A stretch of DNA of 63,983 nt, counting the filler, from Hydrolagus affinis (taxonomy: Eukaryota): the NCBI GenBank assembly GCA_012026655.1. It is 4 parts of 4 records of this genome, joined end to end, with 100 filler letters (N's around TTAATTAATTAA, not from the genome) between each part and the next. Parts side by side here need not be neighbours in the genome. Positions count along the whole stretch, not along the records: positions 24,300 to 39,651 come from JAAILG010018074.1; 3 more parts are not named here. One strand, given 5' to 3'. The position numbers and the translations under genes are program-made. The stretch's first letter is position 1. Each line of letters begins with the position of its first letter. This document shows positions 6,630 through 39,651 of the stretch, one piece after another. Below the pieces are notes generated by a model, which was not told where the DNA came from, ran no database searches, and worked only from the letters and a program-made list of their open reading frames with translations.

Positions 6630-7143
6630 TGCTGGGTTGCTGCAGCTCAATGGTTAGTGCACCTGCTTTGGAAACAAGAGAACCTGAGCTGGAATCGCCG
6701 CAGGGTGACACACTCAGCAAACCGCCTTACTCCACACACATCTATTTACATTGAAATATGTAAGTACACGGTTTGTGAACAATTGGCTGAATCGATTTCC
6801 TGGGGACAAGAATTCCCGTGAAGAAGTTGTTCCTCTCCAACCCAAGCCAATTGTGGGACGCTGATGTGAGGAATTGGCTGCCGCATTTAGCGGCAAATAA
6901 CAATTTTAAAGTTTTGTATGAAATTACTTTTAACTCTTCTATATTCCTGAGAAACTACAACTACAGCCCTAATGCAGGTTTCCTTGATCGAGTGATCACG
7001 TGTGTCCCTGTGTAAGACGCAGATGAACAAGACGCTTCACACCAAAGCAGAATATGACCCGGGAGCAGGAGCAGGAGGAGGGTTGAGGTGGTGTCCAAAT
7101 CACTTTTGTGGGAAGAGCTTTGTCTGTGAGTGGCAGTGACTGA

Positions 7144-7316
7144 GTGGGCGGGGCCCCTTGTGGACGAGGTTATGTGTGGGCGGGGCTCCATGAGGGCAGG
7201 GCTATGTGTGGTTGGGGCTATCTGTGGGCGCGGCTCAGTGTGGGCGAGGCACTGTGTGGGCATAGCGTTGTCAATGTGGGCGTTTTTCCATGTGGGCAGG
7301 GCAGTGAGTGAGTGTC
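7144..7316 (+). repeat. 16-bp GC-box minisatellite (~10 units, consensus GTGGGCGGGGCTATGT)
   Basis: Units such as gtgggcggggctccat, gagggcagggctatgt, gtggttggggctatct, gtgggcgcggctcagt and gtgggcgaggcactgt. Lies just upstream of TATATAAA at 7339-7346. Confidence 0.8.
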
Positions 7317-7387
7317 TCAACATTTCATCCACATTCACTATATAAACAGCCACATGTTGGAGAGTTAATGTCAGAGACAGGATTAAG

Positions 7388-8277
7388 ATGCTCCTTTGGG
7401 TGAAGTGTGCTGTGCTATCAGTAACTCTCAGCTTATTTTCTCGTATGTCACATTCTTATCCTTTACTATTTTCCTATAATTTCTGCTAAAGGCTTCAGTA
7501 GTGCAAAACTAATAATAATATTAATGATAATTGGGATTCTTTGAAGCGCTTCTTCACAGATTTGAGACGTCTCAACGCGCTTCAGAATATACTGTAAAGC
7601 GAATTTACAATGTATTCTCTGGGTGCAACGTGACAGCCAATTTCGCTCAACTGTGCCCAAAAAAATTTCACGGATTCAGTGACGAAATTAATATTATTAA
7701 TATTAATGTTATTTATATTAATAATATTAGTTCTATTTATCTAAATTTATGAATGATTAGCTCCAGAGTAGCAATCCACTAACACCTGGATTTCTAGTTA
7801 CTAGTAGGATCACAGAGACATGAGGAGTAAATAATTTTAGATGAGGCATTGCACTGCCCAGGAAACGAATCTGGCTCTACTCTCTTATGTAGCCAGTGTT
7901 CTAACCATCGAGCAGCAGGATTCCTATGTAATACAAACTTGCTTCTCAATAACCTTGTCGATTTCAATCACAGGAAGCAGCCTACAGGAAATGGAGAAAG
8001 AACCGATGACTGAAATATCGATTCTGGAGGCACAAGATGTGAAATTGTCCTGCAGCTTCAAGAAAATCAGTGATGCGTATGCTCTCTTCTGGTACAGACA
8101 AGCTTCCAGCCACGCTCCTGTGTATCTATTTCGGGGTACAGCGACTAACGTTCACAGGAACCCTGACTTCTCAGCTCGATTTTCCTCCACTGTCAATAAA
8201 TCGAGTGAACATTTCGAACTGAGGATTGGCACAGTCCTGATCATGGACATTGCTGTGTATTACTGCGCCATGATGCC
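7388..8277 (+). CDS. TCR alpha/delta-type V segment V3 (family D, singleton), apparently intact
   Basis: Leader 7388-7442 (MLLWVKCAVLSVTLSLFS, GT 7443). V exon 7974-8277 is open: KLSCSF...FWYRQ...AVYYCAMM. Confidence 0.9.
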
Positions 8278-8316
8278 CACAATGCTGCTGTGCTATGGGG
8301 GCTCTGTACAAAAACA
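8278..8316 (+). other. 23-RSS of V3
   Basis: CACAATG + 23 nt + ACAAAAACA. Confidence 0.93.
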
Positions 8317-8404
8317 ACAACTGGTTATTTTGCTGCTAAACCGTGAGGGGGCATCCTTGCTTCAAGCAACAATAAGCAGCATTTACATATGTTTAAAGAT
8401 ATGT

Positions 8405-8760
8405 AGATAAGAATAAGGAGCAGGAGTAGGCCATTTGACCCCTCCAGCCTGTTCCGCCATTCAAAAAGTTTATAAATTACCATCTAATCTAACTCAAAAT
8501 GCCCCTGTCTAATCCCTGTATCTCTTAATCCCTTTTTCCATAGCAAATCTGTCAATTTCCGTCTTGCTGTGAGTTCAAGGACTGAGCATCTGCAGCTTTT
8601 GGGGGCGTCGAGACTTCCAAAAATTCACTACCATATGAGTGGTTTTATGGAATTCCACCTTCAGTCATCACTACCTTACGAGTGAAGAGATATGTCCTTA
8701 GCTCTGTGTGATAAGGCTTACCCCTAATCTTAAATCACTGACCCCCGAGTTACCCCCAGC
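8405..8760 (-). mobile_element. CR1-type LINE 3' end fragment
   Basis: Begins with ataagaataaggagcaggagtaggccatt..., the same tail as the CR1 fragment at 29.2-29.7 kb that encodes RT C-terminal residues. Confidence 0.65.
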
Positions 8761-10058
8761 AATAAATAAGAAACTTATTGTTATTGGATTGCTGAATCGC
8801 TTTTCTGTGGGTAACAGTTTGTTCAAAAATAATAAATAATAAGAACAAAGAGGACTTTCATGCAATTATACTGTTTGTGGTAGACTGGTGTGCGCAATTT
8901 TCTTGCAGATTTCGCCCTCAAGATATATGGGAAACTCACTCTAGAATATAATCAGTGAAGCGCTTCGAGTCCCCAAGAAGACATGATGAAGCGAACAATC
9001 CAATGCACGTATTCCCATTGTCACGACATTTATCGAAAATTTAGTCTTTGTAAGTAGATATTTCTACAGAGTCTCTTTCACTTAATGTTTCAGGAATCCT
9101 TTCCCTAATAATCTGCGTACACAGATTTAAGGTTAATTTAACTTGAAGGTGAGTGTCTTTCATTGAGTTTGTCAGTCTTGCTCTATTTACAGAGCATTTG
9201 CGTCTGAGTCAGATGATAGTAGGTTTAAACACTGATTCACGAATTGGAACCCATAGCATTTAATGTAATCCACCTAAATTATTCTTAATAACGGGCCTAA
9301 TTATTTGAATATGCCTTTCGCCTGGTACGACATCATCAAACAACAACAGGATTGCATTTATAGAGCGATTTTCATTTCACGGGGACGTCCCAAGGCGAGT
9401 CATCAAACAGAGACTGTTTCTGTCCATCAGGTGGATGGTAAACATCTAATGTTACTTTCACAGTAGAGCTGATGAAATAGACAAAACGGATCTGTTCAAT
9501 TTATTCGTTTCTCTTTCTGAGAAACTTTTGTGACAGACAGGCAAATAAACACATTTTCGTTAAAACAAAAAGTCCTAAATCAAAATTAGACCTAAGCTGA
9601 CATTTCATTTAAACAGGATTTTTTTGTGCATTCAAATGAATACCTTTACAATATAACGCAAAGCTACATATGTACCGTGGCTTTCACGTCAGGAGATCGT
9701 CCCAAGTTGCTGGACAGTCTGGTATTTGGGCAAATGCTGGTGGTCAAGATTGGGGAGGAAGTATTGCTGGGAGAACAAATTGGTTACCAAAGGTCCTGTC
9801 GAAGAGGAAGGCTTTGAGATGTGCCTTGAAGGTGGCAAGGGAAGGAGGCAAGGGGAGGCGGAGTTACTCTGAACAAAATGGAAAGTGATAGGAAGAGTCG
9901 TAACATGTCTGCAGCAATGAATACAGACAAGGTAATGACTCAGGGCTCATTGTCGACTCCACGAGTGAATACACATGTATAATTGAGGAACTCGCTTGCA
10001 GCTGATTTATTGTTGCATTTGGAACAATCACCTCGTCGTGAGTCGACGGCTGATGAGA

Positions 10059-10515
10059 ATGATGCAGAATTTCGCTGCAACATACGCTGTTTTTAATTTC
10101 TTCGTATTATTGTTGTGTAAGTGGATAATGTGTTTGAACAAAACCAGCTTCACTTTTCATTGCTGAATAAGTGCAAATTAGCTTTCCTGATACTATCCGA
10201 ATTTTTTTGAAAGATTGTTCATTTCTATTCCCCAGGTGCCTTGGCTGAACGTGAGGTATCACAGAATCCTCAGGCACTGAGAGTGAATGCAAATGGAAAT
10301 GTGTCTATGGAGTGCAGAACCACTGGATACGTCAATTACTTTCATTGGTACAAACAGTATGAAAATGGTTCCATCCAGTACTTGGTGATTGGAACCAGAG
10401 AGACGAAGGAAGGGGCGAGGTTTATTGCCTTGGCTGACACAAACAAGAAAAACAGCACACTATCAATCAAAGATGTGCAAGTGACAGACACCGCCACTTA
10501 CTTCTGTGCAACGAG
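10059..10515 (+). CDS. TCR V segment V4 (family C), intact
   Basis: Leader 10059-10116 (MMQNFAATYAVFNFFVLLL). V exon 10236-10515: AEREVSQ...MECRTT...HWYKQ...TATYFCATS. Confidence 0.93.
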
Positions 10516-10554
10516 CACAGTGCTGCGTGTCTCAGAGGAGCCTGTACAAAAACA
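10516..10554 (+). other. 23-RSS of V4
   Basis: CACAGTG + 23 nt + ACAAAAACA. Confidence 0.95.
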
Positions 10555-11656
10555 GGATGATGTCGCTGCAGACCAATGCGTAAAGAACCCGCAAGCAAGT
10601 AGAGCTGGGGTTCGATTCTTGGCTGGGCAAATTATTGCGCGATTTTCCTTATTCTAAAAGTCTCTGTTGATAATTGTAATTTATAGGGACATGTTTCTCA
10701 GTCGATTGAGGGATCGCTTTCCTGGAAAAGTCATAATAAGTATTAAAAGGAAACATGTTCAATTCAATCCGCGCCTGTTTATGAGACGCTGCTCTGCACA
10801 CATTGCCTGCTGCAATTAGCCCAACTTATCAGTTCAATTCAATTCACAGCAGATCTCTGAATAATGAATCAGGCACAATTTATGTTGCAAGGTTTATAAT
10901 TACACTAACGCAGAGCATTATGTAGTAAACCAGCTGCTACACGACTGGCCGATAGCCTTTCCTGGGGCAATATTCCAATAATAAAATGGATGACTGTCGA
11001 TTAAGTTTTGCTAGACAAGACTGAGTACAATTGGCTGCCGTGTATTTTATTGAGAAAATACATGATCGCTACACATGGAAGAGATTAGAGATGTTTTAAA
11101 GATGCGATAAGATGCTACATCAAACACAATAACATTTATTGTACATCAAATTTGGATACGTACGCTAGAAAGCATGAGATGTGTTCGTCACATGTTTACA
11201 CACTGGTTAGTAAAATACGAACTAAACCAAGTTTTGGCGAATAATTGTGCTAAAAAAATCTTGTGTTTTGTACACAAACGGCGGTAACCCAAAGCCTCTA
11301 GATGAAATGGGGCAGGAAGGAAACTTGCAAGTTACTAGGGCAGAGACATCAGAGAAACTGGTGATGTAACGTGTCTCCTGCCCATTGGCTCTCAACCCTC
11401 TCAATAAACCATTTCAGCTGTTTACCATAATAATGGTAATGAATCAATATGGGAGCAAGTTGGAAGAACAGAGTGAATGATGCAAAGTGACAAAGACATA
11501 AGTGTTGTGAATAACCTTCAGAACTGCTCTGTAAATTCTGTATGCCATATCTTGTTCTGCCTTCCATACCGCATCTATCTGTCTCCCAGCCAACGGTGTG
11601 GAACTCCACCATCAACGCTCCCTCGACACCACATGCCACTAAACACACATATCACA

Positions 11657-12490
11657 ATGTATATTTACCTGGCAGCAGCCATCGTTATCTTCGTAGGTAA
11701 GCCGCAAACTTATATGAATATATTCCTGCACATGTTACCCAATGCGTATTTTTTCTTATTCCATGAATTACCCAATAAACTACAGGACTTGACAAGCGGT
11801 AGCGTACTGTAACTCAGTGAGTAGGGAGGGCGAATCTACAGGTAAGTTTACTTGCGGCACACACGCGTCCATGTTTCAGTAGTTTTAGATATGAACCCTA
11901 CTGTAGGTAAATTTACTGATCGCGTCTCCGAAGCATTGAATTCCAAAAATTTAATCATATCTAAATCAATCAATTAACTAGTGTTTTGGGGAAACCGATA
12001 CGCGCAATTGGTTCTGTCGTTTTGCCCAGAAAATGTGCTAAATTAATGTTATGTGAAGCGCTTTGTGCTGTCGTGGATACGGGCTAAGGCGCTGTAGTAA
12101 ATGAAAGAAATACCAACATCAATATTTTAGTGATTATTATTATTAATCACATTATTATTATTTATCTACCTTGTTTCTAGGACATTGTGAAGGCGACGCT
12201 GTGACACAGCTCCAATAAATTATGACAGAAAATGTAGGGGAGGATGCAATATTGCAGTGTAATTATACAGCTACTAGTGACATCGGAATGTATCTGTACT
12301 GGTACCGTCACTATCCCATCTCAACTCCAGAATATATCCTCAGCACATCCACCAGCAATAGACCACAATATGCAGACTTTGCCAAAGGACATTTCTCAGC
12401 AACAGTGGATAAAGTGGGGAGAACCGTGCCATTAAATATATCCCAAGTGTGAGTCACAGATTCGGCGGTGTATTACTGTGCACTGAGCCC
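11657..12490 (+). pseudogene. TCR V segment V5 (family A), pseudogene
   Basis: Intact leader 11657-11696. V exon 12181-12490 has stops TAA 12216-12218 and TGA 12450-12452. Confidence 0.93.
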
Positions 12491-12529
12491 CACAGAGACA
12501 TAGATCAGCGGTACCGCCCTACAAAAACT
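12491..12529 (+). other. 23-RSS of V5
   Basis: CACAGAG + 23 nt + ACAAAAACT. Confidence 0.94.
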
Positions 12530-13157
12530 ACCATGTGGAGTCCTGTAGCTCAGTAGTTACAGCACTCGCCTCACAGGCAAGATACAAGGGTTTTAATACA
12601 CGGCTGGGCGAAATGTGGGGCAAGTTTCCTTACGCAACATATATGTGGCTGTTTACATGGCAGTAAGTCGGAACTATGTTGTTAGCGGATTAGTGATTCG
12701 CTATTCCGGGCGTAAGAATTTCTTCAGAATATTGTTGATATTAATAAATTGGTCATTCAATCCAATGGATCTCTGATTTACGAAATCGGCTTTCGCGTTT
12801 CTCCCACGCAACAAGAAGTCAAAGCGTTTACATTACATTCTGTAAAGCGCTATGCTGCACCTCTATGATATGATATGGTGATATATCAAAGGCAAATACA
12901 TATCAAAGGAAACTTGATATTTTTTATTAAATACGGTATTGTCACAAGAAAACCTAAATATTCTTGGCTTTTCGGAAGACCTTTACGATATAGACGTCTT
13001 TCTGTGCAGTTCTAGTCGATTGCTGAACATTTTAAAAAGTAAATAAATCAATAGCTTGCGTTTATACAGCGCCATTCAGAAAGCGAATGTTGAGCCTGGC
13101 TGGAAACCATTTCCTATGAAATGTCTCCAATTGTGCACGTTCTGTACCTGCAATCCA

Positions 13158-13171
13158 CCGGCAGATGGCAC
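13158..13171 (+). promoter_or_regulatory. CTCF-type motif
   Basis: CCGGCAGATGGCAC, exact match to CCRSYAGRKGGCRS; paralogous to 2425. Confidence 0.65.
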
Positions 13172-14179
13172 ACTGAGCACATACAGTATCTAACATGAGC
13201 AGCAACTTGCCTGTTTCCTTTGCGTAACTAACTTACTTGTCAGCTATTGCATGTGCTTCCTGTTACAGTTGGTGTTGGAGCTTCATACACACTATAGCCT
13301 CTGCAGCTGAAAAGTGCTAATGTTTGTTTGCCTAAATATGTTATTGTTGTTCCAGAATCAATTGGCGTATCGCGTTTTCTATCTTATCGTCTTACCCCCA
13401 ATATAATCAACCTCTATTGAGTAGTTCTCACTCTGGTCTTCAACATGTTAGGTTTTCTCAATGGCTATATGGGCACTTTCTTTGGTAAATTGGGGGAAGG
13501 AGAATACAATTTTTCAGTTTAATTTTAAATTGCAGAAGTAAAGCTATTCTTAATTTGGGCCATCCTGCCTTGGATTCAGTTCCAAACAAGACTGCAAAGC
13601 GATAAAAGTTATAAGAGTTCCAGCCTTGTACAACATGCCTTCATATAGGAGTTGAAATAAAGCGTTCAGTATGAATAATTAAAAAATATATGTCTGCACT
13701 TTGAAGACAAATACAATCTGCAATTGGAACACAGTGACTCGCACAGAAATATTCACGAATTGTGGCTCCAACCAAGTTTTCTTGATAATATACCCTTGAC
13801 ACAGTCATGATTTAGAATTTCAGTCCAAACCATCATCTCTATGTACAGTTTTCAACCTGGAACCAAAATCCTCCCGACTCATTAGGTGTAATACCAGCAA
13901 CACAGGCAGTTTGTCAACTTGATTAAAGGAAGTAAACCTTTATTTGTGCATGAGAAATACCTCTATTCCTTCCACTCTAGAGCTGATCACTTGTCGCCAA
14001 TCATCAGCTGATTAAGGCGGAGATACACTGGTTAGTGTGAAACGCCTACAATATTCTTGAATAACCCACTGCCTGCACACATCACATCAGCCGCTGCCTC
14101 ACTACTTGAAACTGAAGCAGCCGAACAGACATATAAAGAGGAAGAGATTCCACTATCTGCCCTCACCTCAGCAGCCAGC

Positions 14180-24299: not shown

Positions 24300-26799
24300 A
24301 TACCTATTTACTTCTCACACTCCAGGCTGGGATACCTTCCAGAATGCACTCACAAATGGAATTTACTGCTCAGGCGTAATTTTCAGGCTCCATTCGTTTT
24401 CTGTTGAAGCACAAATTTATTTCACGATGCTGACAATGAGTTACCAATCACATCATGCTCTGGCCCTCCCATAGCTAACTGTTTACACCCCACATCACTA
24501 CTAGCTGTGTGTACTCACTGGCTTTGGCCTCAACAACAACTATTTGAAATTTTGTATAGTCCCTCATGCAGGATAGCGTCCCAGAGAGAAGCAACATGGG
24601 TGTAGGAGACAGTTGACCAATAGGCGTGACCCAAAGGGGTTCATTGAAGAAAAGTATTCCACAGTTTCAGGCTCACGTCACTGAAATCGCGGCCACCGAT
24701 GTTGCAGCTCAGGGCAATGGGATATGAAGGAAGCTTCATGCTTGTCTCTGCCTCACTGGTCAACATCGATAGACTCGCTTTCAGCCACAACTCCTTGTGT
24801 GGAACACAACGCCCCATTCATTCCACCGTCCACCTCTTTATATTGCTTCAGAGCACACATGATATACTTTCACTACTCAGCGTATCTTTGTTCCACTCTT
24901 CTATTCCACAGCCTGGGCACCAAACAATATCTGCCTTGATACTGATGTGGGTGAAATGCGCGACATGAATGCAATTTGAGGCGTTGCTGATGTGATGATC
25001 ACTGTAACACTTTATCTTTTGTTCAGTCTGTCCTTGAGATATTTCTAGTGTTCGTCTGTTGCCTATTCTTCGTCTACTATTCGTCTACACTTCAGCCAAC
25101 CCTTGCGATATTTCGGTGATTGACAATCATAAATTGAAGGAATAATTCATCTGCAAGGAAAAATATTATTATGGTTATTATGTTTTCTTCGAATTTTAAC
25201 CTCACACTTGTGGGAAATCTCAAAACAATTCGTGTTTTCTATCTCAGCAAAACAATTAAAAAACATACCGAGTGTCTGTTCGATTGGGAACAGAGTGTAA
25301 TGCGAAGTTATCTGAACAACCCCCAACACCCCCCGATAACCCGGTCCTCATCCATTCTTATCCCCTATTTACATACAAATATCTTTATTTTGGCTTGAAT
25401 ATCGTCGTTCTGCCTTTCTCTGTGTTACCCGAATCCTCCGCTCCACCCTTGCGGCCGTGCTTTTAGACACTACTCCCCGATGCATAGTGATCCGCTGTTG
25501 CAAAGCGCTCTGAGACGCCGTCCGGCGTGGATGGCGCTATATAAATCGAAGTTGCTGTTGTTCTTCTGTTATTCAAACCATTTGAACGTGCAACACGCTT
25601 CTTTCCAGGATCATCCTGCACACCTCGATTCCAGCCCAGGTTTACCTGTTTTCTTGCTTCATTTGTGCAATCGGAGTGGAATAGCTAGTGGAATACTGGT
25701 AATCTAATGACTTGCAAGCAACATATTGGGGGGATACATCTCATCAACGACTTTAAATCTATTTGAATTTGAAAAGTAAAGAAAGTCCATTTTTGATTAA
25801 TTCTGTATTAGATAATAATCATAGAAGCAGCCTACAAAACTATTCCAACTATATATACGCTTTATATAATTTAATGTAAAGAGCAGTGACTGTATATGAC
25901 GTTGGGGAATACGGAATCCAAGTCACGAAGAAGGATTATTATTATCATTCTGATTTTCTTTCTTGACTAGAAATTTTAAAAATGTGCAGCTGACGTTTGT
26001 TTGTGATATTGTTTCAGATGATATGAGGTTGGTTAATGGAGGCAGCCCGTGTGCTGGGAGAGTGGAGGTTTATCACGGTGGTCAATGGGGCACAGTGGAT
26101 GGCGCTGGCTCTGGCAATCGTGGCTGGGATATGGAGGACGCGGCTGTGGTGTGTAAGGAGCTGGGCTGTGGAGCCGCCCTGTCAGCGACAGCAAGTGCTT
26201 AGTTTGGGTATGGCTCAGGTCCCATTGTGAAGTCTTCTGTTGAGTGCAAAGGCACTGAAGCTGCTCTGAGGGATTGCGAGTCAGAGAACTGGGTTAACCA
26301 TTCAGACTACTGGATTTCAAACTATTATGATGTCGGCGTCATCTGCTCAGGTAAATAATTCATTTCCTGTTCATTTTTCAGTTGTCATGATTTTGGTGAA
26401 CCAAAGTTTGAGAAAATCTGACGAAATTTGCATCCCAACCTATGCCGAAAAATCGCTCGTTGTCGGGCGTCAGGCTGCCCCAACCGCTATCACCAATACC
26501 GCCCCCGCAACTTACTACCGCGCACCACGCGCTCCATGTTGATTTGTTTCTTCTCCCTTTTTTCCTGCTCATCCGTTCTCACTGATTGAATCAGTTGATT
26601 TTTTCGCCCGAAACTAAAAAGTACTGAAGGAAGAAGTCTGTCCTTAAGGTAGCGATCAGTGTTTCTTCTAAAATAAAACATCAGTAGCTCAGCCTGACCG
26701 ATTCCATCCTGATTTGTAGTCACGTGTCTTTGCTATCTTCCAAACATTCACATAACCCCGGCTCCGGATCTGCCAATTTTAGCGCAGTGCTGCCTCTCC

Positions 26800-27600
26800 T
26801 CTCCCTCCTCAGACCCTGATTTCACAGCAGTTACTGTCTTCCCTCAACTTCTCAAACTCCGATAACTCTTTAGGTATTTTCCCTCCTCACTCAATCAGAC
26901 ACCCATTACACAGCAGGAAATGTCGCTCATCTATTTCTCAGACATAGTTTCTCTGCAAATACCGTCTCTCAGACCCTCATTATGGAGAAGCTCCTGTCGC
27001 TACTCACCTAAGCAGCAGCTGCTATCTCTCCGCCCTCACAGGCACCCATCATGCAACAGTTAATTTCCCTCCTAAATTTCTCAAAACTCAATTATACTGT
27101 AATTATTATCTCGCCTCGGACCTCCATTACACAGAAGATACTGTCTCCCCTCACATTCTCAGACGTTATTACACATCCGGATTTGTCCCTCCACAAGCTC
27201 TGAGAACCTCCTTACTCAGTAAGTGATGTCTCTGGTCGCCCTTTCAGAAAAATCATTGCAGCGAAGTTAATTTCCCTCATCATACCCTCAGTCGCATATT
27301 CGACAGCATGTACAGTCTGTTCTCATACCAACTTAGACTGCCATTACACAAAGTATAACACATCTCCACATCCTTTCGGAAACCCATCACAAAGCAGGTA
27401 GTGACTCTCACCAAACTCCCCTCCACCATTACACATCACCCATAGGACATCTTGATTCTCTTTACCCTCTTAGAACGCAACACGCGGAGCATAATGTCTC
27501 GACTGACCCTCACAGATACTAACTTTGCAGCAGATAATGTCTCTCCTCACCCTATGAACAACCCCTCCTCCCATTACACAGCAGTTTTTGTCGCTCACGT
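26800..27600 (+). repeat. Old degenerate ~43-bp minisatellite in SRCR intron 1
   Basis: Recurrent ccattacacagcag...tgtc.ct.ctca...tctcaga. Confidence 0.55.
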
Positions 27601-27789
27601 CTCCCTCTCATTCCCCACAAACACCCACGTCCACACTACATATCAGGTACTGATCCTGTTAAATAAATGTTACTTTTCATTTTAAAGTGATCATATTTTA
27701 TTTTAACCACAGGGTGGGAAACTTTGTTACTACTTGATATCCCATAATATATAACCATATATCAGTATTTTTAAGTACTATTATTAAAT

Positions 27790-28290
27790 CCCTAGATTGG
27801 GGCGTCACGCTTCCTCTCACCCTTCAAATCTCTCCACTTCAATGCACCACGCCCCCTCCCACCCCCCCCTTCCCCACCACCAGACAGACCTTGCTTCTGC
27901 CCAAACCAGCAAAGATCAAACATTTCACAGTTTCAAGCAACTTACTGTCCCGGAGAGGACCGATTTCAAGATCCTCAGTTTTCTCTCCAATTCTCTGCAC
28001 CCTCCTAACTCTGTGACCTCCTCCTCCGGTTCTGGTCTCCCACTTGTCCGCCGAATACCTCCATTCACTATGTCCCGAAGCTCTGGATTTCCCTTGCTCA
28101 CTCCCTTCGCCTCGATGGCTGACCTCCTACTTTCTGGTCTCTGCTGAAGACGTTTCTGTTGGACCGCGCCTACTGTTATCTTTTACGCCCTCACCATGCA
28201 TCTGGTCAGGGATCCGTTATTGTGAAGCGATCTGAGACTCCATCCGGCGTTGAGGACATTACATAAATCGAATTTGTGGTTGTTGTTGGA
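27790..28290 (+). mobile_element. L2-type LINE fragments
   Basis: Pyrimidine-rich decayed ORF ending in ctgaagacgtttctgtt and the tgtgaagcgatctgagac tail. Confidence 0.6.
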
Positions 28291-30060
28291 TATTGATTTT
28301 CTTTCTTCTCCCCTTTTCCTGCTCATCCTTTCCGAAGTTTGACTCCTTGAATCAGACTTGTTTGGGTTCCAAACGTAAAAATTACTGATGCACGCACTGA
28401 GTCCTCAGAGTATTGATTCGTGTTTCATCCAAAATAATTCCACAATCTCTCTACCAGGCCCACTTATGTAGCATGTTAGGTGACTTTGCTGTGGTATCCT
28501 CCACACCCACCGCACTCCCCGGTTTGGGTTCTTCCACTGGCCGTGCTACATAATTACTAGTTGCTGTTTTAGTTGAAATCTGTGTATTAATTCATTGTCT
28601 CAGACAATACACAGTCATTTCACTTTCCTTTGGATTTTTTGAAGGGCTGTGTGAAGTTATCCAGTCTTAAATGGTTCAACATCCCAAAATTGTATGTTAT
28701 TAGCAGCACAGAGAAGCGTTCACTATCACACCTGAAACGACGCACTTGGTTTGCTCTTCAGCGGTCCGACCTCTCTTTATCCCCACTAGCTTCGTGATGT
28801 CATACCTATTTTGTTCAACAACACAGTACAGAATCACAGAATAATATAAGATTTCCGGTGAAGAGTGTTTAGACATCAAGATGTTTCTGTTCGAACGCGC
28901 CTACAGTTAACGTTTACTCCTTCACCATGCCTCTGGCCTGAGATCTGTTATTGTGAAATGGACTGACACGCCATCCAGAATGGAGGGCATTACGTAAATC
29001 GAAGTTGTGATTGTTGTTGCATGTTGATTTTCTTTCTTCTCCCCTTTACCTGCTCATCCATTCCGAATTTTGACTCATTGAATTCGGCTTATTTTAGTTC
29101 CAAACGTAAAATATTCTGCTTCAGATGCTTCAGATTTTCGTGGAAATCAGTTCATTAGTTCACCTTCTCGGACAATACACAGTCATTTCAATTTACATTA
29201 GATTTTATGAACAAAAGATCATAAAACTATGGGCAGGAGTAGGCCATTCTGCCCCTCGAGGCTGCGGCGCCATTTGATAAGATCATGGCTGATCTTCTGA
29301 CTTAACTCTATTTACCTGCTTATCTCCATATCCTCTAATACCACTTTTAAAAAAACATCTATCAGTCTCAACTTTGAACATGTTCAAGGACTGAGCATCT
29401 ACAGCCTTCTGAGTGAAGAAATGTTTCCTTAATTCTGTTGTAAACGGCTGACCCTTAATTGTAGGATGATGACCCCCTGGTTATAAATTCTCCTACTATG
29501 GGAAATAATCCCTCAGTGTCTACTTTATCCAGCCCTTTAAGAAACTTATACGTTTCACTAAATTTTCCCCTAATTCTTATGTATTCTAGAGAATGCAGCC
29601 CTTGTTTATTCAACCTATCCTCATAGTTCAGTCCCCTCATCCCAGGTACTAACCCGTGAGTCTACGCTGCACCAGCTCTAAGGAAGTATGTTATTTACTA
29701 AATACGGAGACCAAAACTACGCTTTGTGAAGTGGTTTGTGAAGTCATCCATTAAATGTTTCAACATCAGCAAATTATTATTATTATTTTCTTAAATTAAT
29801 TTTGAATATGTTAATCACTTAGAATTGCTTAATGGATAATATGTTCAGCACAGAAAAGCGTTCACTCTCGCACATCAAACGAAGCACTTGATTTGCTATT
29901 AAAGGGACTGAACACCCTTTATCCCCACTAGTTTGTTGATGTCATACCTATTTTCTTCAATAATAAAGTACAGAGTCACCGAATGATACTTTCAATTCGG
30001 AGAAAAGCGTATAGACATCAACGTTTCTTAAAAGACCAAATATATGGAGTTATCCCTGAA
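28100..30060 (+). repeat. Intronic tandem duplication (~28100-28900 vs ~28900-30060); copy 2 interrupted by CR1
   Basis: Matching blocks at 28120-28390/28912-29120 and 28650-28880/29735-30020. Confidence 0.75.
29215..29720 (-). mobile_element. CR1-type LINE 3' fragment
   Basis: ORF 29455-29640(-) MRGLNYEDRLNKQGLHSLE..RIRG..ETYKFLKGLDKVD is a CR1 RT C-terminus; CR1 tail at 29215-29300. Confidence 0.85.
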
Positions 30061-32089
30061 ATTGCAGTCAACGTCATTCCGTGTACTTTACTGCCACAAC
30101 CGTTTGCCCTTTAAATGAATCAATTAGTAGCAAAAACGAGGCCATTTTATTGGATTGCGACGAACATCTATTTAGCTCTGCTTCAAATATCCAACACTTC
30201 ATATTAATGCAAGTTTTTATTGGTTTTCAATTGTACAAAATGTTGCAATTATCCCTGAATAATTATTAATTTTCTGTTATTGTCAGGAACTAAAAGTCCC
30301 AGACTGGTGAATGGAGGCAGCCGTTGTGCGGGTAGAGTAGAGCTGTATACCAACAATAATTGGGGGACAGTTTGTGGAGATACTCTGGACATGGAAATGG
30401 CAATACATTCCTGTAAATATATGGGATGTGGATCAGCTGTGTCAGTATCTGGTGATGGTCGCTTTGGAGAAGGATCGGGTCCAGTTGTTGGTCGGCCAGG
30501 TTGCGGCCATGAGCGAGATGGTGGCATATCCTGTTCAGGTAGAGTTTACATTAATAGTTCAACATATATTGTGCCAGAACTGGATCAATATTATCAAGTT
30601 CATGCTGTGTCTGCTTGATTCATAGCCACTATATAAGGTAAAATATCTGAATGCCCGATAGCAACAATATGTATCAAAGTGTAAGCAAAGCAACTCGTGG
30701 TTCAAAATAATTGATCAAGTTATTCTAGCAGGCAACGATACTAACCATCGTTCATATAATGCATTACACATGGCAGAGAACAAAACTGCTTCTGCCCATC
30801 TCCTCAGCCACACACAGATAGGAGGGACAAAAAATATAACAAAGAATTTCTCACACAATTTTTTTTCTGGGATTCCTGAGTTTATGCCGAGTGGGTGCAA
30901 ATTATAGATAAGTTAGAGCACGCAACTTAAACAAACTCGCAGGTTTCTCTGTTCCTTCACACCCCTTAAACTTGTACTCTCTAGCCTCTATTGTCTCCCC
31001 TTATTTCTCCTCCCAAAGTGCATCGCTTCACATTTCTCCACATTAAATTTCATCTGTCATTGGTCTGCCCATTTTACCATTCTGTCTATATCTTCTTACA
31101 CAGTGCTACTATCCTCCTCACTATTTACCTTTTTTCACCTAACTTTGCGTCATCGGCAAATTTAGCAAACTGTATTAATTTGCGCTTCGTTTTATGACTG
31201 TTGCATACTTATGGACTTCACTCTAACGTGTCACGTGCGATATAATTGAATATTGTACTATTTTGAAGCTGGACAAACACTTTTGAATAAGTTCAACACA
31301 AATCAAATTAACACTGGTGTAGCGCTCTCTACGCTGCGTTGCATCACCCAATGCATCCCGACTCCCCCCCCCACCCCCCACCCACCACACCATCCATCCC
31401 GCCATCCAGCTGAGGTCTGACACACTGACTGCCCAGCGACTTGGGACGCCCACCTGACGTGAAAGTCGCTATACAAGTATCATTTTGATGTTGTTGACTC
31501 ACAGCACTTAGTCAACGGTTGAATCACCTGCAACGTATTTAAATGTAGATTCATTTCATTCTACATTTCTGATCATTGCGTTACCTTGCGCTCGTTTGCT
31601 GTTAGTGGCTAATCTTTAAGTCAACCACAAATAGATCATCATGCTTTTAAATTATAAAAATTCATAGCAAGTTATTCTTCCATACAGAACACGATTCTCT
31701 GAAATTAACCGGTGGAAGCAACAACTGTTCTGGCAGAGTTGAGTTGCAGCGCGATTATAAATCAGGAAGCATCTGCGATTACTATTGGGGTATGCAGGAT
31801 GCCGATGTGCTCTGCAGGCAAATGGATTGTGGATTCGCTTTGTCAACTGGATCTGAAGCACAGTTTGGGAAAGGAACAGGTCTAATCTGGAAAGCTAACT
31901 TTAATTGTGTTGGTAACGAGACCCGAGTGCATGACTGTCCTGCGGAATTCTGGGAGGAGTTCAGCTGCACACATGACCATGATGTTACTGTAATTTGTTC
32001 AGTTAAGAGAAACAATAATAATAATATTAAAAATAATAATAATAATAATCATACCTGCATATGATACAGCAACTTACCACATCGTTGTG

Positions 32090-32450
32090 ACAACCACAAC
32101 AATGGCAACAAAACTACACTTGTATAGCGACTTTCACGTCCCACAGAGATGGATAGTCATAGATTCCGACGCGAGCTGTGATCGGGGAAGAGGATGGTGC
32201 AGGGAAAGGTGGACGTCCGTCAAAAGGGTGGATCTTGAGGCGGGTCTTGAAGGAGTCTATGTAGGAGTGAGTCATTCGGATTGTGGAATGGAGCTCCAGA
32301 AGTTGGGGGCAGCATCGCTGAGCCAGCACTGGCTCACCCTCCAATGATGGTCAGGTCGGGTACGTGGAGTAGGCAGCAAAGTGATCAGCGGAGGTCGAAG
32401 GCAGGTAAAGATAGGAATGGGAGGTGGCATAGGTAGAGCGATAGACGAAT
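32090..32450 (-). mobile_element. L2-type LINE 3' fragment
   Basis: Minus strand reads APNFWSSIP...SFKTRLK, followed by the tail. Confidence 0.7.
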
Positions 32451-35400
32451 AGCTCACAGAATATACTGTTAAGTGTACTTCCAGTGTTTTGTTATCCGAA
32501 ACCCAATAATTATAAAAAATAATTGAGACAATCTCTTTTAAGCTAAAACATTTATTCGAAATAACAAGCTGTCTGCTTTACAAAAGTTAGTATACTGTAA
32601 AAGTGAGATTGTGATGAGATATTGTTCAGTTTTCACGGGTCATAATAATCTAAATCTTTAAAACTAAGCAGAAACCAAATAACTGGCTTCCGTATAATTT
32701 GTAAAATATACCACTTTACTTGGAGGTAGCAAAAATACATCAATGCTCTTATTGCAAAAGAGAAGCAGCTCATATTGAATCCTGCGACACAGCAGTTATC
32801 TCTCGCTCCCACATTTTAGCATGGTATATATAACATATATACCTTTGAGCAAATTCGTCTAGTTTTAGGCTCTGAAGATAATGCTCTGCTGCTTTAATTC
32901 AAATGACTATCTACAATATTCTTTATTGGTAACGAATCCAGACTTACTACCACAATTGGAGCATTGTGCTTGGTTATCGGGCAGTAATCTGTCATTTTCT
33001 TAGTTAATGGTTTAAATCTGTAGGTTTGATTACTACTAACATCACAAACTGTGAAAGGTTGCTGGTACTTTCTATTTGATAGACGAGCTTTCTGTATCAT
33101 GAACTCATATTGTCACATTGGATCTGTGAATTGTTTAATAGGAATTCTGCAATTACATTATCTTCATCTCTCCCACTTTTGATTGAGTAATTATCAATTT
33201 AAATAATTGAAGGTAAACAGTGGCATTTACGTTTAGAGAACGGGGGCAGCCACTGTGATGGGAGAGTGGAGATTTATTACGATGGTACCTGGGGAAGATT
33301 GCTGGATGATTCCTGCGACGTATTAGATGCCGATGTCATCTGTCGACAGCTGAAATGTGGGTCAGTGATTTCAGACAACAACTCTTCCCATTATGGGGAA
33401 GGCTCTGGACCTGTGTGGATCAATAATGTTCAGTGTTTGGGAAATGAGACACACATCTGGAACTGCCCATATTCCACAGTGGCTCCATCATCCAATAGCA
33501 GCACTGATGCGCGTGTTCATTGTTCAGTTGAGAGCATTTTAATGATAAATATGTTAATATCACGCAATGAAATATCTAATAATATAATATGCCTTCCTGC
33601 CTCTGAATGGCTGCCACGTCATCGATGCAGCGAAGACCGGTAAGTTGAGTAATATTTATTTTTTGGATTGTGAATGTCATCAAAATACAAAGAAAAATCC
33701 CCAAGTGTAAGCTGTCGTTTCGTTTTATATTGGAAAAGGTAACAAACAGCATTAGTAAATCCAATCAACTGGGAATATAAGTGATTCTTCAGGTAAGTGA
33801 ATATTTACCAATAATTGAAATTTCACGGTTAGATTTATCTAGTAGCTCGTTGTTACTCGATTAGTGGATCACATTTTGGGAGTAATAGTTCCCCCAAATA
33901 AATAAAACAATATATTTGCTACTCAATGCAGGATTGTTTGTGCAATTTGCTGCCATATTTCGCACACAAATGCTACAATAAGTTTACATAAAGTTTATCA
34001 TATGAAGAGCATTTGTGCATCTTGTGAGATTGACGGTGATCATAGCGTAATATCCAGCACTATTTGAATGAAGTAGATTGGGCAGACGAGTGATGATCTG
34101 AAATTATTACGCTCTCTGATAATCTTTCCTACCTCCAGTTAATAATTCTATTAAAGTTTGTAAAATGGTTTATGCTTTATATTAAATTAATCTCTGTTCT
34201 TGTTCAAACGATGCTGCAAAGATCAGACTGATCGACGGTGAGAGTTCGTGTGCTGGGAGAGTGGAGATTTACTGCAATGGATCCTGGGGGACGGTGTGTG
34301 ATGACACCTGGGGATCACTAGAGGCGGATGTTGCGTGTAAACAGCTGGAGTGTGGAACCGCAGTCACTGTAACAGCTGCGGCCCCTTGCAGGAAGGCCTC
34401 AGAGCCAATTTGGTTGGATGAGGTGAAATGTTCATGGAACGAGTCAGCTCTCTGTGAATGTGCTTCGTCTCCATGGGGGCCTCATGACTGTTACCACAAA
34501 GAAGATGTCACCATCGTGTGTAAAGGTAAGAGATTGAATATCGCTTGTTGCACCATCACGAAGTACTGATATGGTGTATGTTTGCGCTGTCGATTCACAA
34601 GATTATAGGTTGATCTCCGCACATGGGATAGTCATTGTAAATGTCGACGAGCTAATGCAGCAGGGGATGCTGCCGAGGTGGTCACTAACTGTTCAGATTA
34701 CATGAAAGATGATGGTAACGCTGGAGAATCCAAATGACTATCTACTACCACCTGTCTTAATGAACTCTGTCACTGTTGCTTCTTAGGGCACAGGCAGGTG
34801 CGGCTGGTGAATGGTCAACATACCTGTGAGGGGAGAGTGGAAGTGATTTACAATGGGACCTGGGGCACAGTCTGCTTAAACTTCATGGGAAACAAAGCCG
34901 CTGAGGTCATCTGCAGACAGTTAGGTTGTGGCCAAGTAATCAGCGTCGATTATCGTGTAAATTGGGATAGGTTCTGGACCTATTTGGCTGGATGACATAG
35001 ATTACAATTCAAAGGGGTCCTTCTTGTGGCAATGTTCCTCAACACCTTGGGGTGAACATGAATGTCGTCATTTGGACGATGTGGCTGTAATTTGTACAGG
35101 TAATAATACTTTGATGGAGTAAACATTTCTTGGATTATAATTATTGTAATGATATTTCATCATAAGCATTTCACTTATAAATGTATGTTTAAAGCAGGGA
35201 AAGCAAAGAAAAAATCGGTCTTTTCGAAACAGTGCGAAGGACGCTCACACGATCTGGCCCATCATTTAGCAGGTACTGATTTAAAAGTGAAACGAATCAA
35301 CAAAGCTTGCATTTCATGTGAATTCACTCGCATCTGTAGGATTACTCAACGCAATTCAGATTATCTACTATAAAGCGGTAGTAGTAATGTATAGGACATA

Positions 35401-35604
35401 TGTATTTGACAGTAACAAGGATCATTTGAATTTTATGTATGTGAGTAATTGAGACGTTTCGAGACATCTAGAAGACCTGAAAAGCGCGATTTCAAATGCA
35501 AGGCTTATTTTATTAATTATTAACATGTGTGATTTGAATGTTTTCTATTCAGGACAGAAGTTGCGATTGGTTGGAGGAAGCACTGCTTGCTCGGGAAGAG
35601 TTGA

Positions 35605-35883
<279 letters not shown>

Positions 35884-36463
35884 TAGTTTACTATTTTCGT
35901 TGACAAATTCAGCTAACTTCTGGGATAACTTAAAGACAAAAATAGAATTAATGCTGGATTAAATTTGTCTGCATTATTTTGCAGGTTCTGCACTTCGCGA
36001 AGCAACAAGCCGTCCCACACCTTTAGGTAATTAACATAATTAATTGTCGTCTTGATAATATGTGCTAAACTTCGAAGAGATTATCACTGCAATTTCAATT
36101 TTGATACAATATAGTGAAAGTCATATTATTTGAAAGATACCTTGTCAGAATTTATCTTTCATTTAGAACGAGGAGGCTGTTTAACTCAAGAAAATAGTTT
36201 CATATGCACATCTGTAAAGCTGTTGTTGGCATTCCTCTGATTACACTGTCTAATGTGCCATGAACTGAATAACACGTGACCCGAGACAAAATAGTGAGAA
36301 GTGTTTGATTCAAGAAATTTTAAATAAAATTTCGAAATTCTGAGAACTGAATCATATCCAACAAAAAAAGACTAATGTTGAGTCTTTGATTTGCAAAGCC
36401 CATCTGATCAACATCCCATTGATCACCTGTATCGTGTTTGAATATTACTATGTCACAACTGGT

Positions 36464-36706
36464 GGTGATGTCACTGAGAGTGGTGATGTCACTGAGAGTG
36501 GTGATGTCACTGAGAGGGTGATGTCACTGAGAGCGGTGATGTCAGTGAGAGCGGTGATGTCACTGAGAGGGGTGATGTCACTGAGAGCGGTGATGTCACT
36601 GAGAGTGGTGAGGTCACTGAGAGCGGTGATGTCACTGAGAGCGGTGATGTCACAGAGCGGTGATGTCATAGCTGGTGATGATGTCACTGAGAGCGGTGTT
36701 GTCACT
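36464..36706. repeat. 18-bp minisatellite (GGTGATGTCACTGAGAGY, ~14 units) between duplicated TM-exon acceptors
   Basis: Direct read of the units. Flanked by a ~65-bp direct repeat at ~36377-36440 and ~36710-36775. Confidence 0.95.
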
Positions 36707-37654
36707 AATGTTGTGTCTTTGATTTGCAAAGCCCATCTGATCAACATCCCGGTGATTCCCTGTATCGTGCTTGTGTTCCTGTTATCAACAGTGCTGTTTG
36801 CACTGATGGTAGCGATGGACAGCAATTCTCTGGGAAGAGGTGAGCGTGGAGTCAGGTTACATAGCGCTGTGGTTAACTTTTTATTTAACAATTCAGAAAA
36901 TTTCAGATAATCTGATTGTTAACCCACTCTTCCAATTAAAGCGTTCATTAATATAACACATTGATCAGTTGTTAGTGTCTTTATTTCATTCTGTTAGGTG
37001 CACGTGCATTTATAAAGATACACTAAGGGAAAGTATAGATATAGACATAAAGATATAATCAGCGAACAGTGAACTACAGAAGCGTAAATGCATAAATACA
37101 CAAATATTTGCAAATGTAAACTAATCACATTGACATACTTTATACTCAGGAATACACAGACTTAGGTAATAATATACAGGGAAGTGAGTAAACCTTCCAT
37201 TTGATATAGTGCTTTTCAAATGTTCTAAATGTATCAAAGCACCTCAAAGCATATGCTGTAAAGTGAATGTACTGTACATGAAAGTGAAATAGTACATACC
37301 CATCCTTGCAATCGAAAAGTCGTATATACAGAGTTAATAAAGTACACAGAAAAATATGGACACTGATACAAAGATATACAAAGAAGCTATAGTGATCATG
37401 AAATACATTTTTGTTCCACTACGAAAACCCGCTTTACATAATCCAGATTTATTAATACCTCAATTTCAAGATGAATTGTGCAACGTCAGGATATTATTGT
37501 AATGTGTGCATGTAAACTTCCAACAGAGGAAAAATATCCCTCTGTTCGTTTCTATCAAGCAATTTATGATGAAATTGAGGATTTGCCAATCAGAAGAAGA
37601 TCACTTGGTGCTGGATCCTTCGGTATGTACATTATATTCATGTTGGTTCTATAC

Positions 37655-38015
37655 CTATCTCCCTCCCCTCCTACCTCTACCTCCACTCCTTACTCTCTCC
37701 CTCCGCTACTATAGCTCTCTCTACTCCTAACTCTCTCACCAACCTGTGACCTCTCTCCCTCCCCTCGTAACTCTCTCACTGCACTCCTAATTCTTCGGTT
37801 GCCTTCTAAATCTTCCTCCCCTACTAACTCCCTACCTACACCTCACTCCTCTCCAAACTCTCACTTTCCACCCTAAATATCTCCCTCGACACCTAAATTT
37901 CTCCTTCCCATCCCAACGATTCCTCCCTCCTACTTATTCTTCCCCTACTAAATCCATGCCTGCCTCGCTAACTCACTCGCTCCCCTCCTAACTCTCGTAC
38001 GTCCCTGCCTCCTGT
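37655..38015 (+). repeat. Polypyrimidine (CT-rich) low-complexity tract
   Basis: Nearly G-free ctccct/ctaact sequence. Confidence 0.7.
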
Positions 38016-38394
38016 CCTGCACATCTACATTGCAGAGAACATAAAGGAAAACATTTATGGAAAAATTTTACATTGTTGCGTATTAATTGTGCTATAATTT
38101 TATGGAACAACTATACCACCCTTCTGCAGAGTCCCACAAGCAGTCTCGGATTGATGGACTAACATTTTTCAACCACGAATATTAATCACTCGATAAGCAA
38201 TTATCAACTAACAAATGTTGTCCATCTTATTGCAAGTTAGTACTGCTTGAATGATGGATAGTTGCTCAAAACTTTACCCTGCTGGTAATCAAAGCAGGGT
38301 ATTCTCGCTTCCGAGGCGAATGTTCTAAGCATAAATCTGAGGTTGACTGAAATTGACTGTTGTTTCTGGATTCATTGAGCGTTAATATTGACTA

Positions 38395-38433
38395 GGTTTT
38401 TGTACAGGCAAGGCGTTGACTTGCAGCACTGTG
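38395..38433 (-). other. 23-RSS of V10 (perfect consensus)
   Basis: Minus strand CACAGTG + 23 nt + ACAAAAACC. Confidence 0.96.
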
Positions 38434-39345
38434 CTACTTGTTCTTAAACCACAATAATATGTGGCAGCGTCTGTGATAGTGAGGCTGGTTATGCTTAATG
38501 TGGTTTGTTTCTGACTCTTGTCAAGCTGTGAAGAAAAATGTCCTTTTGCAAAATCTGCAGAGTAGCTACGTTCATAAATATCTCTGTATAGAATGTATTG
38601 GGGAGGGTGTCCTCGGTAATGTCTGTACCAGTACAGAGCGGCAAAGGGCGAGCAGGTGGTATATGAGCAGCTAAGACTCGCCGTGTCTCCCTCTTGTTTG
38701 CTCAGCCTGGGAAACTGCTGTCTGATTGAATCTTCCAGCAGCACATCTGCAAACAGATAAAACGATCAGCGTCAAACTTTGTGCAATTATTGTACTGATA
38801 GACCACTAAGCTCAGACATGAGAAGGTTAATGGATAGGACAAACCATTCGGTTAGTTAACATGGTCAGCACATACATACGAGTTAACTGAGGAATAAGGA
38901 GGTACCAATCGTTTGTTCATTGCCGGATCGCCTTTGTGGAGACAGTAGCAATCTAAAATTACGGAAGTGCTCGCTCAATCCATTTCTGCTTTTGGGATAC
39001 TGGGCACAAAATATAAATCCTCCAAAAAAAGCACAATTATAAAATTGATCATTTCAATCCACGACTGTTTCTGGGGACGCTGCTGTGCGCAATTGGCTGC
39101 CATGTTTCGCCCATAAACGTACAGTCAATTCACTTGACAGTATATGCTGTGAAGCGCTATGAATGGTTGATAAAACGTGAAAATCGCAATATCAAATGGA
39201 AGGTTTATGATTATTATTGATGCCGGAACATTCAATAATCTTCAGAAGAAACAGGCGATATTTGCTTATCCATATGTATTGTATGGTACACAGCCTTACC
39301 TGATATAAAGCTCAATAAAAGAAGCGAAGCGATGAAAAGTCCCAT
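38434..39345 (-). CDS. Inverted TCR delta/alpha-type V segment V10 (family E) with extra CDR1 Cys, intact
   Basis: Leader 39345-39300 (MGLFIASLLLLSFIS, gtaagg donor). V exon 38746-38434: DVLLEDSIRQ...LSCSYTTCSPFAALYWYRHY...AATYYCGLRTS. Confidence 0.93.
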
Positions 39346-39529
39346 TGTCGCTCCTCAGGAGACTAGCTTTGCAGCTCAGTTTTATTATACAAATTTTACG
39401 TCGGCGATGAGGTGTTTCAGCATCACTTCCGTGACAGAAAAGCATTGCTTCATGACACAAGCCCTCCCTGTGACCTTGTGGTCAGGACGGTGTTGATCTG
39501 TTCATGTTCGATGACTTCAACAAAAGTGT

Positions 39530-39625
39530 GTGAGTGGGTGAGTGAGTGAGTGGGTGGGTGAGTGGGTGAGTGGGTGAGAGGGTGAGTGGGTGAGTGGGTG
39601 AGTGGGTGAGTGGGTGAGTAAGTGA
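39530..39625 (+). repeat. (GAGTGGGT)n simple repeat at contig end
   Basis: Direct read. Confidence 0.9.
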
Positions 39626-39651
39626 GCCAGCTATGCCAGGAGGGATAAATG

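Follow-up and report, generated by a model that had tools for sequence, protein, structure and literature searches.

A probable pseudogene of a CD163-type, WC1/SCART-like receptor family beside a T-cell receptor V gene segment in the chimaera Hydrolagus affinis

Introduction

In cattle, gamma-delta T-cell co-receptors come from the WC1/SCART-type side of the CD163 family, whose receptors are composed of scavenger receptor cysteine-rich (SRCR) domains. SCART1, or CD163c-alpha, contains eight SRCR domains in the order m-l-b-c-n-d-e-d' and is associated with gamma-delta T cells of mouse and cattle (Herzig 2010, PMC2906472). A tyrosine motif, Y-(Q/E)-(D/C/E)-(I/L), is common to WC1 and all CD163c-alpha-like cytoplasmic tails, and potentiation of T-cell activation by WC1 requires phosphorylation of the YEEL tyrosine (Herzig 2010, PMC2906472). 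The CD163 family has been traced to chicken and platypus (Herzig 2010, PMC2906472). Here a relative of these receptors is described from the chimaera Hydrolagus affinis (assembly GCA_012026655.1), where a gene with seven SRCR domains, with high probability a dead copy, lies tail to tail with a V gene segment, probably of T-cell receptor (TCR) alpha/delta type. The stretch of DNA concerned, called the window throughout, measures 63,983 nucleotides, filler included, and joins four parts from four records; the part analysed covers positions 24300–39651 of the window (JAAILG010018074.1) and contains 0 N. All coordinates are counted along the window.

The receptor gene appears to be a new member, in the form of a dead copy, of a known family, and its genomic context beside a V segment is new. 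Trypsinogen genes lie within the TRB locus and are comparable in that a gene of another family is lodged in an antigen-receptor array; the chimaera locus differs in that the lodged copy is, in all likelihood, a pseudogene. The MHC-Y region of chicken chromosome 16 (PMC4988538) is also alike, with a gene of another family in or beside an immune multigene array and copied with that array. Within the literature library consulted, searches covering shark, chimaera and fish found no published SRCR, WC1 or SCART gene inside a TCR V array, and no account of the family from cartilaginous fish. For comparative immunologists, the 7-SRCR family would represent a candidate co-receptor family of shark and chimaera T cells, and co-regulation with the TCR would be indicated should the V array hold intact copies too.

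Structure of the receptor gene

All seven exons proposed in the preliminary description match the Pfam SRCR family (PF00530), and an SRCR hidden Markov model (HMM) compared with 872 six-frame pieces of 24300–39651 returned these seven alone, all on the + strand. Exon borders were taken by direct reading of the window sequence. Together these results bear out the claimed architecture of seven SRCR exons, a transmembrane (TM) exon and a cytoplasmic exon on one contig, and the distance of about 770 bp claimed between the receptor gene and the recombination signal sequence (RSS) of the V segment was measured as 772 bp from the cytoplasmic-exon donor to the nonamer. Each SRCR domain occupies a single exon with phase-1 borders by a shark-like reading, three of the splice dinucleotides being mutated.

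The SRCR1 exon (26018–26350, 333 nt, phase 1/1) lacks Cys2 and Cys7, two cysteines also missing from domain 1 of the elasmobranch homologues. SRCR2 (30287–30538, 252 nt, phase 1/1) is a short domain without the Cys5–Cys6 loop, and this shortened version (FGEGSGPV-IGP..CGHQRD) is also seen in Scyliorhinus (P0126, positions 1–42) and Heterodontus (P0232, 185–254; P0190, 250–319). An internal deletion was considered for SRCR2 and rejected; because this form is conserved in both sharks, the comparison suggests an old, maintained variant domain and not a lesion. SRCR3 (31688–32002, 315 nt) has eight cysteines and is followed by SRCR4 (33213–33527, 315 nt), again without Cys2 and Cys7. The membrane-proximal portion consists of SRCR5 of 'd' type (34208–34525, 318 nt by the shark-like border), SRCR6 of 'e' type (34787–35099, 313 nt) and SRCR7 of d' type (35553–35863, 311 nt). 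Between the latter two lies an inter-domain (ID) exon missed by the earlier reader (35195–35272, 78 nt, phase 1/1), which contains one conserved Cys and can be aligned to the ID of eight elasmobranch proteins; in a Heptranchias locus (L001) the ID likewise has an exon to itself.

The TM exon (36732–36839, 108 nt, phase 1/1) and the first cytoplasmic exon (37527–37622, 96 nt, phase 1/1) were matched by an elasmobranch tail HMM at E 5e-4 and 5e-5 respectively, with the next best of the 872 six-frame pieces not below E 1.7. The cytoplasmic exon reads EEKYPSVRFYQAIYDEIEDLPIRRRSLGAGSF, carries FYQAIYDEIEDL and is followed by a good donor, G|gtatgt.

A 'linker' had been proposed at 36.4–36.7 kb, and this element of the preliminary description did not survive: the sequence is a minisatellite and duplication insertion in the TM exon, and a coding linker was rejected. 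The insertion (36441–36773, + strand, 333 bp; Tandem Repeats Finder (TRF), repeat-family comparison and contigs of other copies) consists of an 18-bp minisatellite (36462–36706; TRF) and the second copy of a 70-bp direct repeat (36371–36440 and 36704–36773), the unit of which includes the start of the TM exon, such that the TM-exon acceptor derives from repeat copy 2. Contigs of other copies join 36440 straight to the sequence after 36773, skipping the 333 bp, and the insertion is therefore private to the window copy.

Relationship to the CD163 family

Homologues were pooled from a search with SRCR4, in which long proteins with many SRCR domains were ranked first by summed score, and the pool was then searched again domain by domain. 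Collinear 7-SRCR matches by blastp and tblastn, TM and tail included, were obtained from Pristiophorus japonicus (P0051), Scyliorhinus torazame (P0126) and Heptranchias perlo (P0155 and P0178), and further 7-SRCR homologues are present in Heterodontus, Mustelus, Carcharodon, Rhinoraja and Mobula. Automatic names of these elasmobranch proteins vary between DMBT1-like, M130-like and WC1.1-like. A tree of 119 single domains over 104 columns was computed with IQ-TREE, including sheep WC1.1, marmot M130 (CD163A) and rhino M160 (CD163b), named by their source records, and two proteins identified as DMBT1 from their CUB/ZP domains; support is given as ultrafast bootstrap/SH-aLRT, and deep forks are weak.

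Apart from the short SRCR2, which remained unplaced, every domain of the chimaera gene is sister to the elasmobranch domain of the same rank: SRCR1 at 99/93, SRCR3 at 88/88, SRCR4 at 93/77, SRCR5 at 96/88, SRCR6 at 99/84 and SRCR7 at 99/91. At the next level, SRCR3 falls inside a b/c supergroup (98/98), SRCR4 forms a clade with domain 4 of tarpon and Bombina (99/93), SRCR5 is sister to the 'd' clade (98/85), SRCR6 belongs to the 'e' clade of CD163A-8, M160-11 and WC1-5/10 (95/96) and SRCR7 to the d' clade of CD163A-9, M160-12 and WC1-11 (100/92). The placements of the last three domains mean that the membrane-proximal d-e-d' cassette is present. SRCR1 does not group with domain 1 of sheep WC1. 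Domains of the CUB/ZP-bearing DMBT1 and of lamprey each form clades of their own, and in the 119-domain tree 0 window or shark domains join those of DMBT1; the grouping with DMBT1 or other non-CD163 proteins that had been named as grounds for refutation is thus not seen. The best-matching stretch in the PDB structure of human CD163 was also tried as a test of domain type and rejected as non-discriminating, with SRCR4 to SRCR7 all picking SRCR7 (718–818) and SRCR3 picking SRCR9 (928–1028).

Wherever a domain clade is resolved, the window sequence branches as outgroup to those of sharks and rays. Together with a V segment closest to Callorhinchus V genes, this makes a holocephalan (chimaera) the most likely source and agrees with the earlier attribution to a basal jawed vertebrate. 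Assignment to the CD163 family, of the WC1/SCART kind, is likewise supported by the d-e-d' cassette, the WC1-type tail motif and the tail profile match discussed below. On this comparison the gene is placed in the CD163 family, on the WC1/CD163c-alpha (SCART) side, and appears to be neither WC1 nor SCART proper. The locus and its relatives place a 7-SRCR receptor with a d-e-d' cassette and a WC1-type tyrosine tail before the holocephalan/elasmobranch split.

The likeness to WC1 extends to group B SRCR exons, the membrane-proximal d-e-d' cassette followed by a TM segment, a tail distributed over several small exons and membership of a multigene family (WC1: Herzig 2010). WC1 differs in having 11 SRCR domains with a repeated b-c-d-e-d cassette, whereas the window gene has seven and no cassette repeat, and domain 1 of the latter does not group with WC1 domain 'a'. 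The ID of WC1 lies between c and d, and the long ID of the mammalian CD163 family between c or n and d, whereas that of the chimaera gene, also a separate exon, lies between e and d'. SCART1/CD163c-alpha is of similar size (eight SRCR domains against seven) and resembles the window gene in its tail motifs (YEDI/YEEI type); a further likeness, by cysteine pattern only, is the domain preceding d-e-d', which lacks Cys2 and Cys7 both in domain 4 of the chimaera and shark genes and in the 'n' domain of CD163c-alpha (Herzig 2010). The bovine CD163c-alpha tail is encoded on two exons (Herzig 2010), compared with at least four in the present family, as in Heptranchias. CD163A/M130 and CD163b/M160 have the d, e and d' domain clades in common with the window gene, along with a TM segment and a Y-x-E-hydrophobic motif, but their N-terminal h-i-j-k domains have no counterpart in it. 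Proteins of DMBT1/SSC5D type also contain tandem group B SRCR domains with one exon each; DMBT1 differs by its own homogenised SRCR clades and by CUB and ZP domains without a TM segment or tyrosine tail.

The cytoplasmic tail

The tail segment FYQAIYDEIEDL aligns with elasmobranch LYQAIYEEIENIP and with AVYEELDY and ALYQEIDD of WC1, comparable elasmobranch tails being GLYQAIYEEIENIPP. Sheep WC1 has AEAVYEELDY, the WC1-like proteins of camel and degu EALYQEI(D/E), and the tails of tarpon, coelacanth, gar and Bombina A(V/L)YEEI. A common context, A-[IVL]-Y-x-E-[IL]-[ED], aligns the window with WC1. The motif itself is YDEI in the window, YEEI in sharks and YEEL in WC1, with YYT and YDD(V/A) coming after it in intact members; the D at the second place of the window motif lies outside the published set, whereas elasmobranch relatives have Y-E-E-I. 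When six elasmobranch tails were compared by hhalign with WC1-type tails, the match reached 97.1% with E 5e-11 over 114 columns, which span the TM segment, YxEI, YYT and YDD. The control with CD163A tails gave a much weaker match of 69.9%, E 4e-5 and 52 columns; in this respect too CD163A/M130 differs from the present family.

Condition of the window copy

The coding sequence is interrupted at three places: an in-frame TAG in SRCR1 (26200–26202), loss of frame in SRCR6 at a T-run (34962–34963) with a stop in the old frame at 34993, and a frame shift in SRCR7, which is one base short in a G-run (35625–35627). SRCR6 also carries Tyr in place of Cys5. Among the splice sites, the SRCR3 donor reads G|TT in place of G|GT, SRCR4 has ttgAAG as acceptor and G|TT as donor, and the acceptor dinucleotide of SRCR5 is AA, with a phase-0 AG acceptor present at 34221/34222. 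Shark genes have TCAG|gt at the equivalent donors, and SRCR4 in other copies has ttgCAG, a better acceptor, and G|GT, the canonical donor (33210 A>C, 33528 T>G), as seen in short contigs from four of four public DNA runs. The basic stop-transfer residues that follow the TM helix in sharks are missing, and the later tail exons (EYYTS, YDDVE) were not found in the remaining 2 kb by tblastn or with the elasmobranch tail HMM; in Heptranchias, the next tail exon lies 635 bp after the first.

The TAG and the three splice-site changes are substitutions, not length changes. At 35626, other copies have either the same 3-G run or an extra T giving TGG TGA. Since independent contigs also have the 3-G run, the SRCR7 defect is not an assembly slip, and because copies share this run or carry the stop-making T, several copies of the family in the public runs appear dead. 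The SRCR1 stop, the SRCR6 and SRCR7 frameshifts, the damaged splice sites and the lack of downstream tail exons sustain the first impression that this copy is dead, and the window copy is, with high probability, a pseudogene.

The V gene segment

The V-exon (38434–38747, − strand) has an open frame, matches the Pfam V-set at 4.6e-15 and was the only V-like piece among the 872 six-frame pieces. Its landmarks, Cys (LSC), Trp (WYR) and Cys (YYC), are present. The probable leader exon (39300–39345, − strand), identified by sequence reading only, encodes a signal-peptide-like MGLFIASLLLLSFIS with donor G|gtaagg in phase 1 and is separated from the V-exon by an intron of 552 bp. The sole good RSS of 24300–39651 lies at 38395–38433 on the − strand and is a perfect 23-RSS, with CACAGTG (38433–38427), a 23-bp spacer and ACAAAAACC (38403–38395). 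Leader, landmarks and RSS together identify a germline V gene segment that looks intact. No J, D, C or second V was found in the piece.

The only database matches of the V-exon are four V proteins of Callorhinchus milii, at 62–71% identity. Among named atlas clusters the closest is 'T-cell receptor alpha/delta variable' (score 0.96), and TCR matches in PDB, among those listed, are alpha and delta chains, mixed with antibodies. The LDK pattern of framework 3, within the FSSQLDKSQKQTTLSI stretch, resembles the 'LNK' pattern of alpha/delta chains. On these leads a V segment of TCR alpha/delta type is the probable assignment, and the embedding in a TRA/TRD V region proposed in the preliminary description is putative, the piece holding a single V.

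Two minor features adjoin the V gene. Within the leader intron, contigs of related V copies skip 69–101 bp at 38779–38896, which means that the window V has extra leader-intron sequence relative to its paralogues. Upstream of the leader, at the edge of the piece (39525–39619), lies a microsatellite of about 12 units of the 8-bp AGTGGGTG.

Linkage and copy number

The receptor gene (+ strand) and the V gene (− strand) stand tail to tail, with the 3' end of the former directed toward the RSS end of the latter. In three runs, all bins of 37462–38441 are covered by independent contigs without joints, and two near-identical contigs, at 37850–38129 (0 differences) and 38180–38403 (3 differences), tile the region between 37.7 and 38.4 kb, in which the preliminary description had named chimerism as a ground for refutation. 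No single listed contig reaches from the cytoplasmic exon to V. A mis-join between the receptor gene and V is unlikely, because jointless contigs cover the region and two of them are nearly identical to the window.

Most contigs from the public runs are 90–95% alike to the window, and their depths greatly exceed those of the near-identical ones. They include exons, introns and the 37.6–38.1 kb spacer, and some of the copies share defects of the window copy. As contigs of this similarity occur at high depth, the gene and its surroundings appear to be multicopy, in at least one chimaera-like genome, and the earlier expectation of further family copies is answered by the many found in these runs.

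In five elasmobranch homologue loci (gene plus 10 kb on each side, about 295 kb in total) no V and no good RSS were found; a weak V-like match in one of them (L004) was rejected, since it lies inside a LINE (long interspersed nuclear element) open reading frame (ORF). Close SRCR–V linkage is, given these five loci, not a conserved feature of the family.

Sharks, too, have clustered family members: one 53-Mb Heptranchias chromosome carries XP_067857535, -552, -561, -563, -002 and P0178. Two loci, L001 (CM068656.1, 11.95–12.02 Mb) and L003 (2.00–2.07 Mb), lie on the same chromosome. The Heptranchias genes span 45–49 kb, with some 16 kb separating SRCR1 of L001 from the first coding exon upstream.

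Origin of the locus and alternative explanations

With a probability of roughly three in four, the + strand carries a pseudogene copy of a chondrichthyan CD163-type multigene family of the WC1/SCART side, a fragment copied together with the V array. The family plan begins with a signal exon far upstream, continues with SRCR1 without Cys2 and Cys7, a sometimes short SRCR2, SRCR3 and SRCR4 without Cys2 and Cys7, and proceeds through SRCR5 (d), SRCR6 (e), a short ID exon and SRCR7 (d') to the TM exon and a tail of several small exons with YxEI, EYYT and YDDV motifs. Ligand binding by the SRCR domains of intact members would be expected from homology with WC1, and Src-family kinases would phosphorylate the tail tyrosine, providing a signal alongside the T-cell receptor; a gamma-delta co-receptor role is a putative one, drawn from the same homology. 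The window copy would be unable to make a receptor, given the stop, the frame losses, the splice damage, the TM insertion and the lack of EYYT/YDDV exons in the following 2 kb. Most economically, a gene fragment would have been caught in duplicating V-array DNA and then copied along; V-array duplication more likely took the SRCR copy with it as a passenger.

Several points weigh against this interpretation. Copying with the V array is deduced from short-contig depths, with no second assembled cassette, and the contigs used for copy checks are mostly paralogous and come from runs whose organism is unlabelled or coded. The tree is without verified SCART1, CD5, CD6, SSC4D or SSC5D sequence. A lone shark tail used to search the whole database matched elasmobranchs only, and the link to WC1 tails is therefore a profile-level result, part of which is the TM helix. 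With regard to the lesions, a frame-keeping phase-0 splice path runs through SRCR3, SRCR4 and SRCR5 (32001–34222), from TCA|GTTAAG to acag|TGG and then from TCA|GTTGAG to caaag|ATC, the same G>T change being present at both the SRCR3 and SRCR4 donors; because this path keeps the frame, the splice changes of these exons may not be lesions. Finally, it is conceivable that the later tail exons are situated beyond 39651, in which case V would fall within an intron.

Functional coupling would give the locus a different meaning: WC1/SCART-like genes would be resident in the holocephalan TRA/TRD V array, with intact paralogues between V segments and chromatin or enhancers shared with TCR-delta rearrangement. 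This is unlikely, although the two genes are tail to tail and 772 bp apart, many further copies of the gene, the spacer and related V segments occur in public runs, and the family tail is WC1-like. Parallels may also be drawn with a CD163-like gene that marks a T-cell subset in cod (PMC9276791) and with WC1/CD163-like SRCR genes linked to chicken MHC-Y (PMC4988538). Set against these, the sole copy seen is dead and truncated at its 3' end, the piece contains a single V, and the five elasmobranch loci (about 295 kb) lack any V or good RSS. Somewhat more doubtful still is the fuller proposal that the holocephalan WC1/SCART-like family and TRA/TRD V segments form a co-amplified cassette, the intact members of which are co-expressed with TCR-delta rearrangement, as an ancient coupling later broken elsewhere.

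Errors of assembly might in principle explain either the lesions or the adjacency. Two lesions, in the T-run at 34962 and the G-run at 35625, alter the length of short homopolymers, the commonest type of long-read error, and few near-identical contigs are available to check them. An intact gene is nonetheless a slim prospect, as base substitution accounts for the TAG at 26200 and for all three splice-site changes, independent contigs carry the 3-G run or the stop-making T, and neither the loss of Cys5 in SRCR6, nor the loss of basic residues after the TM helix, nor the missing later tail exons fits such errors. An adjacency produced by joining unrelated sequences between 37.7 and 38.4 kb is very improbable: a CT-rich low-complexity repeat at 37658–37788, high-copy repeats nearby (depth up to about 14,000 at 37070–37265) and the want of a single listed contig bridging exon and V would favour it, but the piece has no N, 37462–38441 is fully covered in three runs without joints, and the contigs at 37850–38129 and 38180–38403 match the window with 0 and 3 differences. 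That the gene is of DMBT1/SSC type, or some other SRCR gene outside the CD163 family, is hardly credible. Elasmobranch homologues are named 'DMBT1-like' as often as 'M130-like' or 'WC1.1-like', and single DMBT1 SRCR domains from PDB score equal to single CD163 domains against the window domains; yet no window or shark domain groups with CUB/ZP-bearing DMBT1, the gene possesses a TM exon and a WC1-type tyrosine tail, and its d-e-ID-d' order is that of the CD163 family. No CUB/ZP exon turned up in the six-frame SRCR and tail scans of the piece, for which no dedicated CUB/ZP profile scan was made.

Repeats and other minor features

An inverted repeat of 89 nt with 78% identity (37189–37277 and 39119–39207) brackets the cytoplasmic exon and the V gene. 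Its left arm lies in a stretch with a contig depth of about 4,000–14,000, and both arms are for this reason probably copies of a high-copy element. Copies of an element resembling short interspersed nuclear elements (SINEs), with the core GCGCTATATAAATCGAAG, occur in the 5' flank and introns of the receptor gene at 25489–25565, 28211–28287 and 28942–29018, with further, inverted copies of the element at 31456–31490 and 32106–32140. Intron 1 contains one repeat pair of 246 nt and one of 156 nt, as well as an ORF fragment on the − strand (29455–29640), NYEDRLNKQGLHSLEYIRIRGKFSETYKFLKGLDKVD, which resembles the C-terminal end of LINE ORF2.

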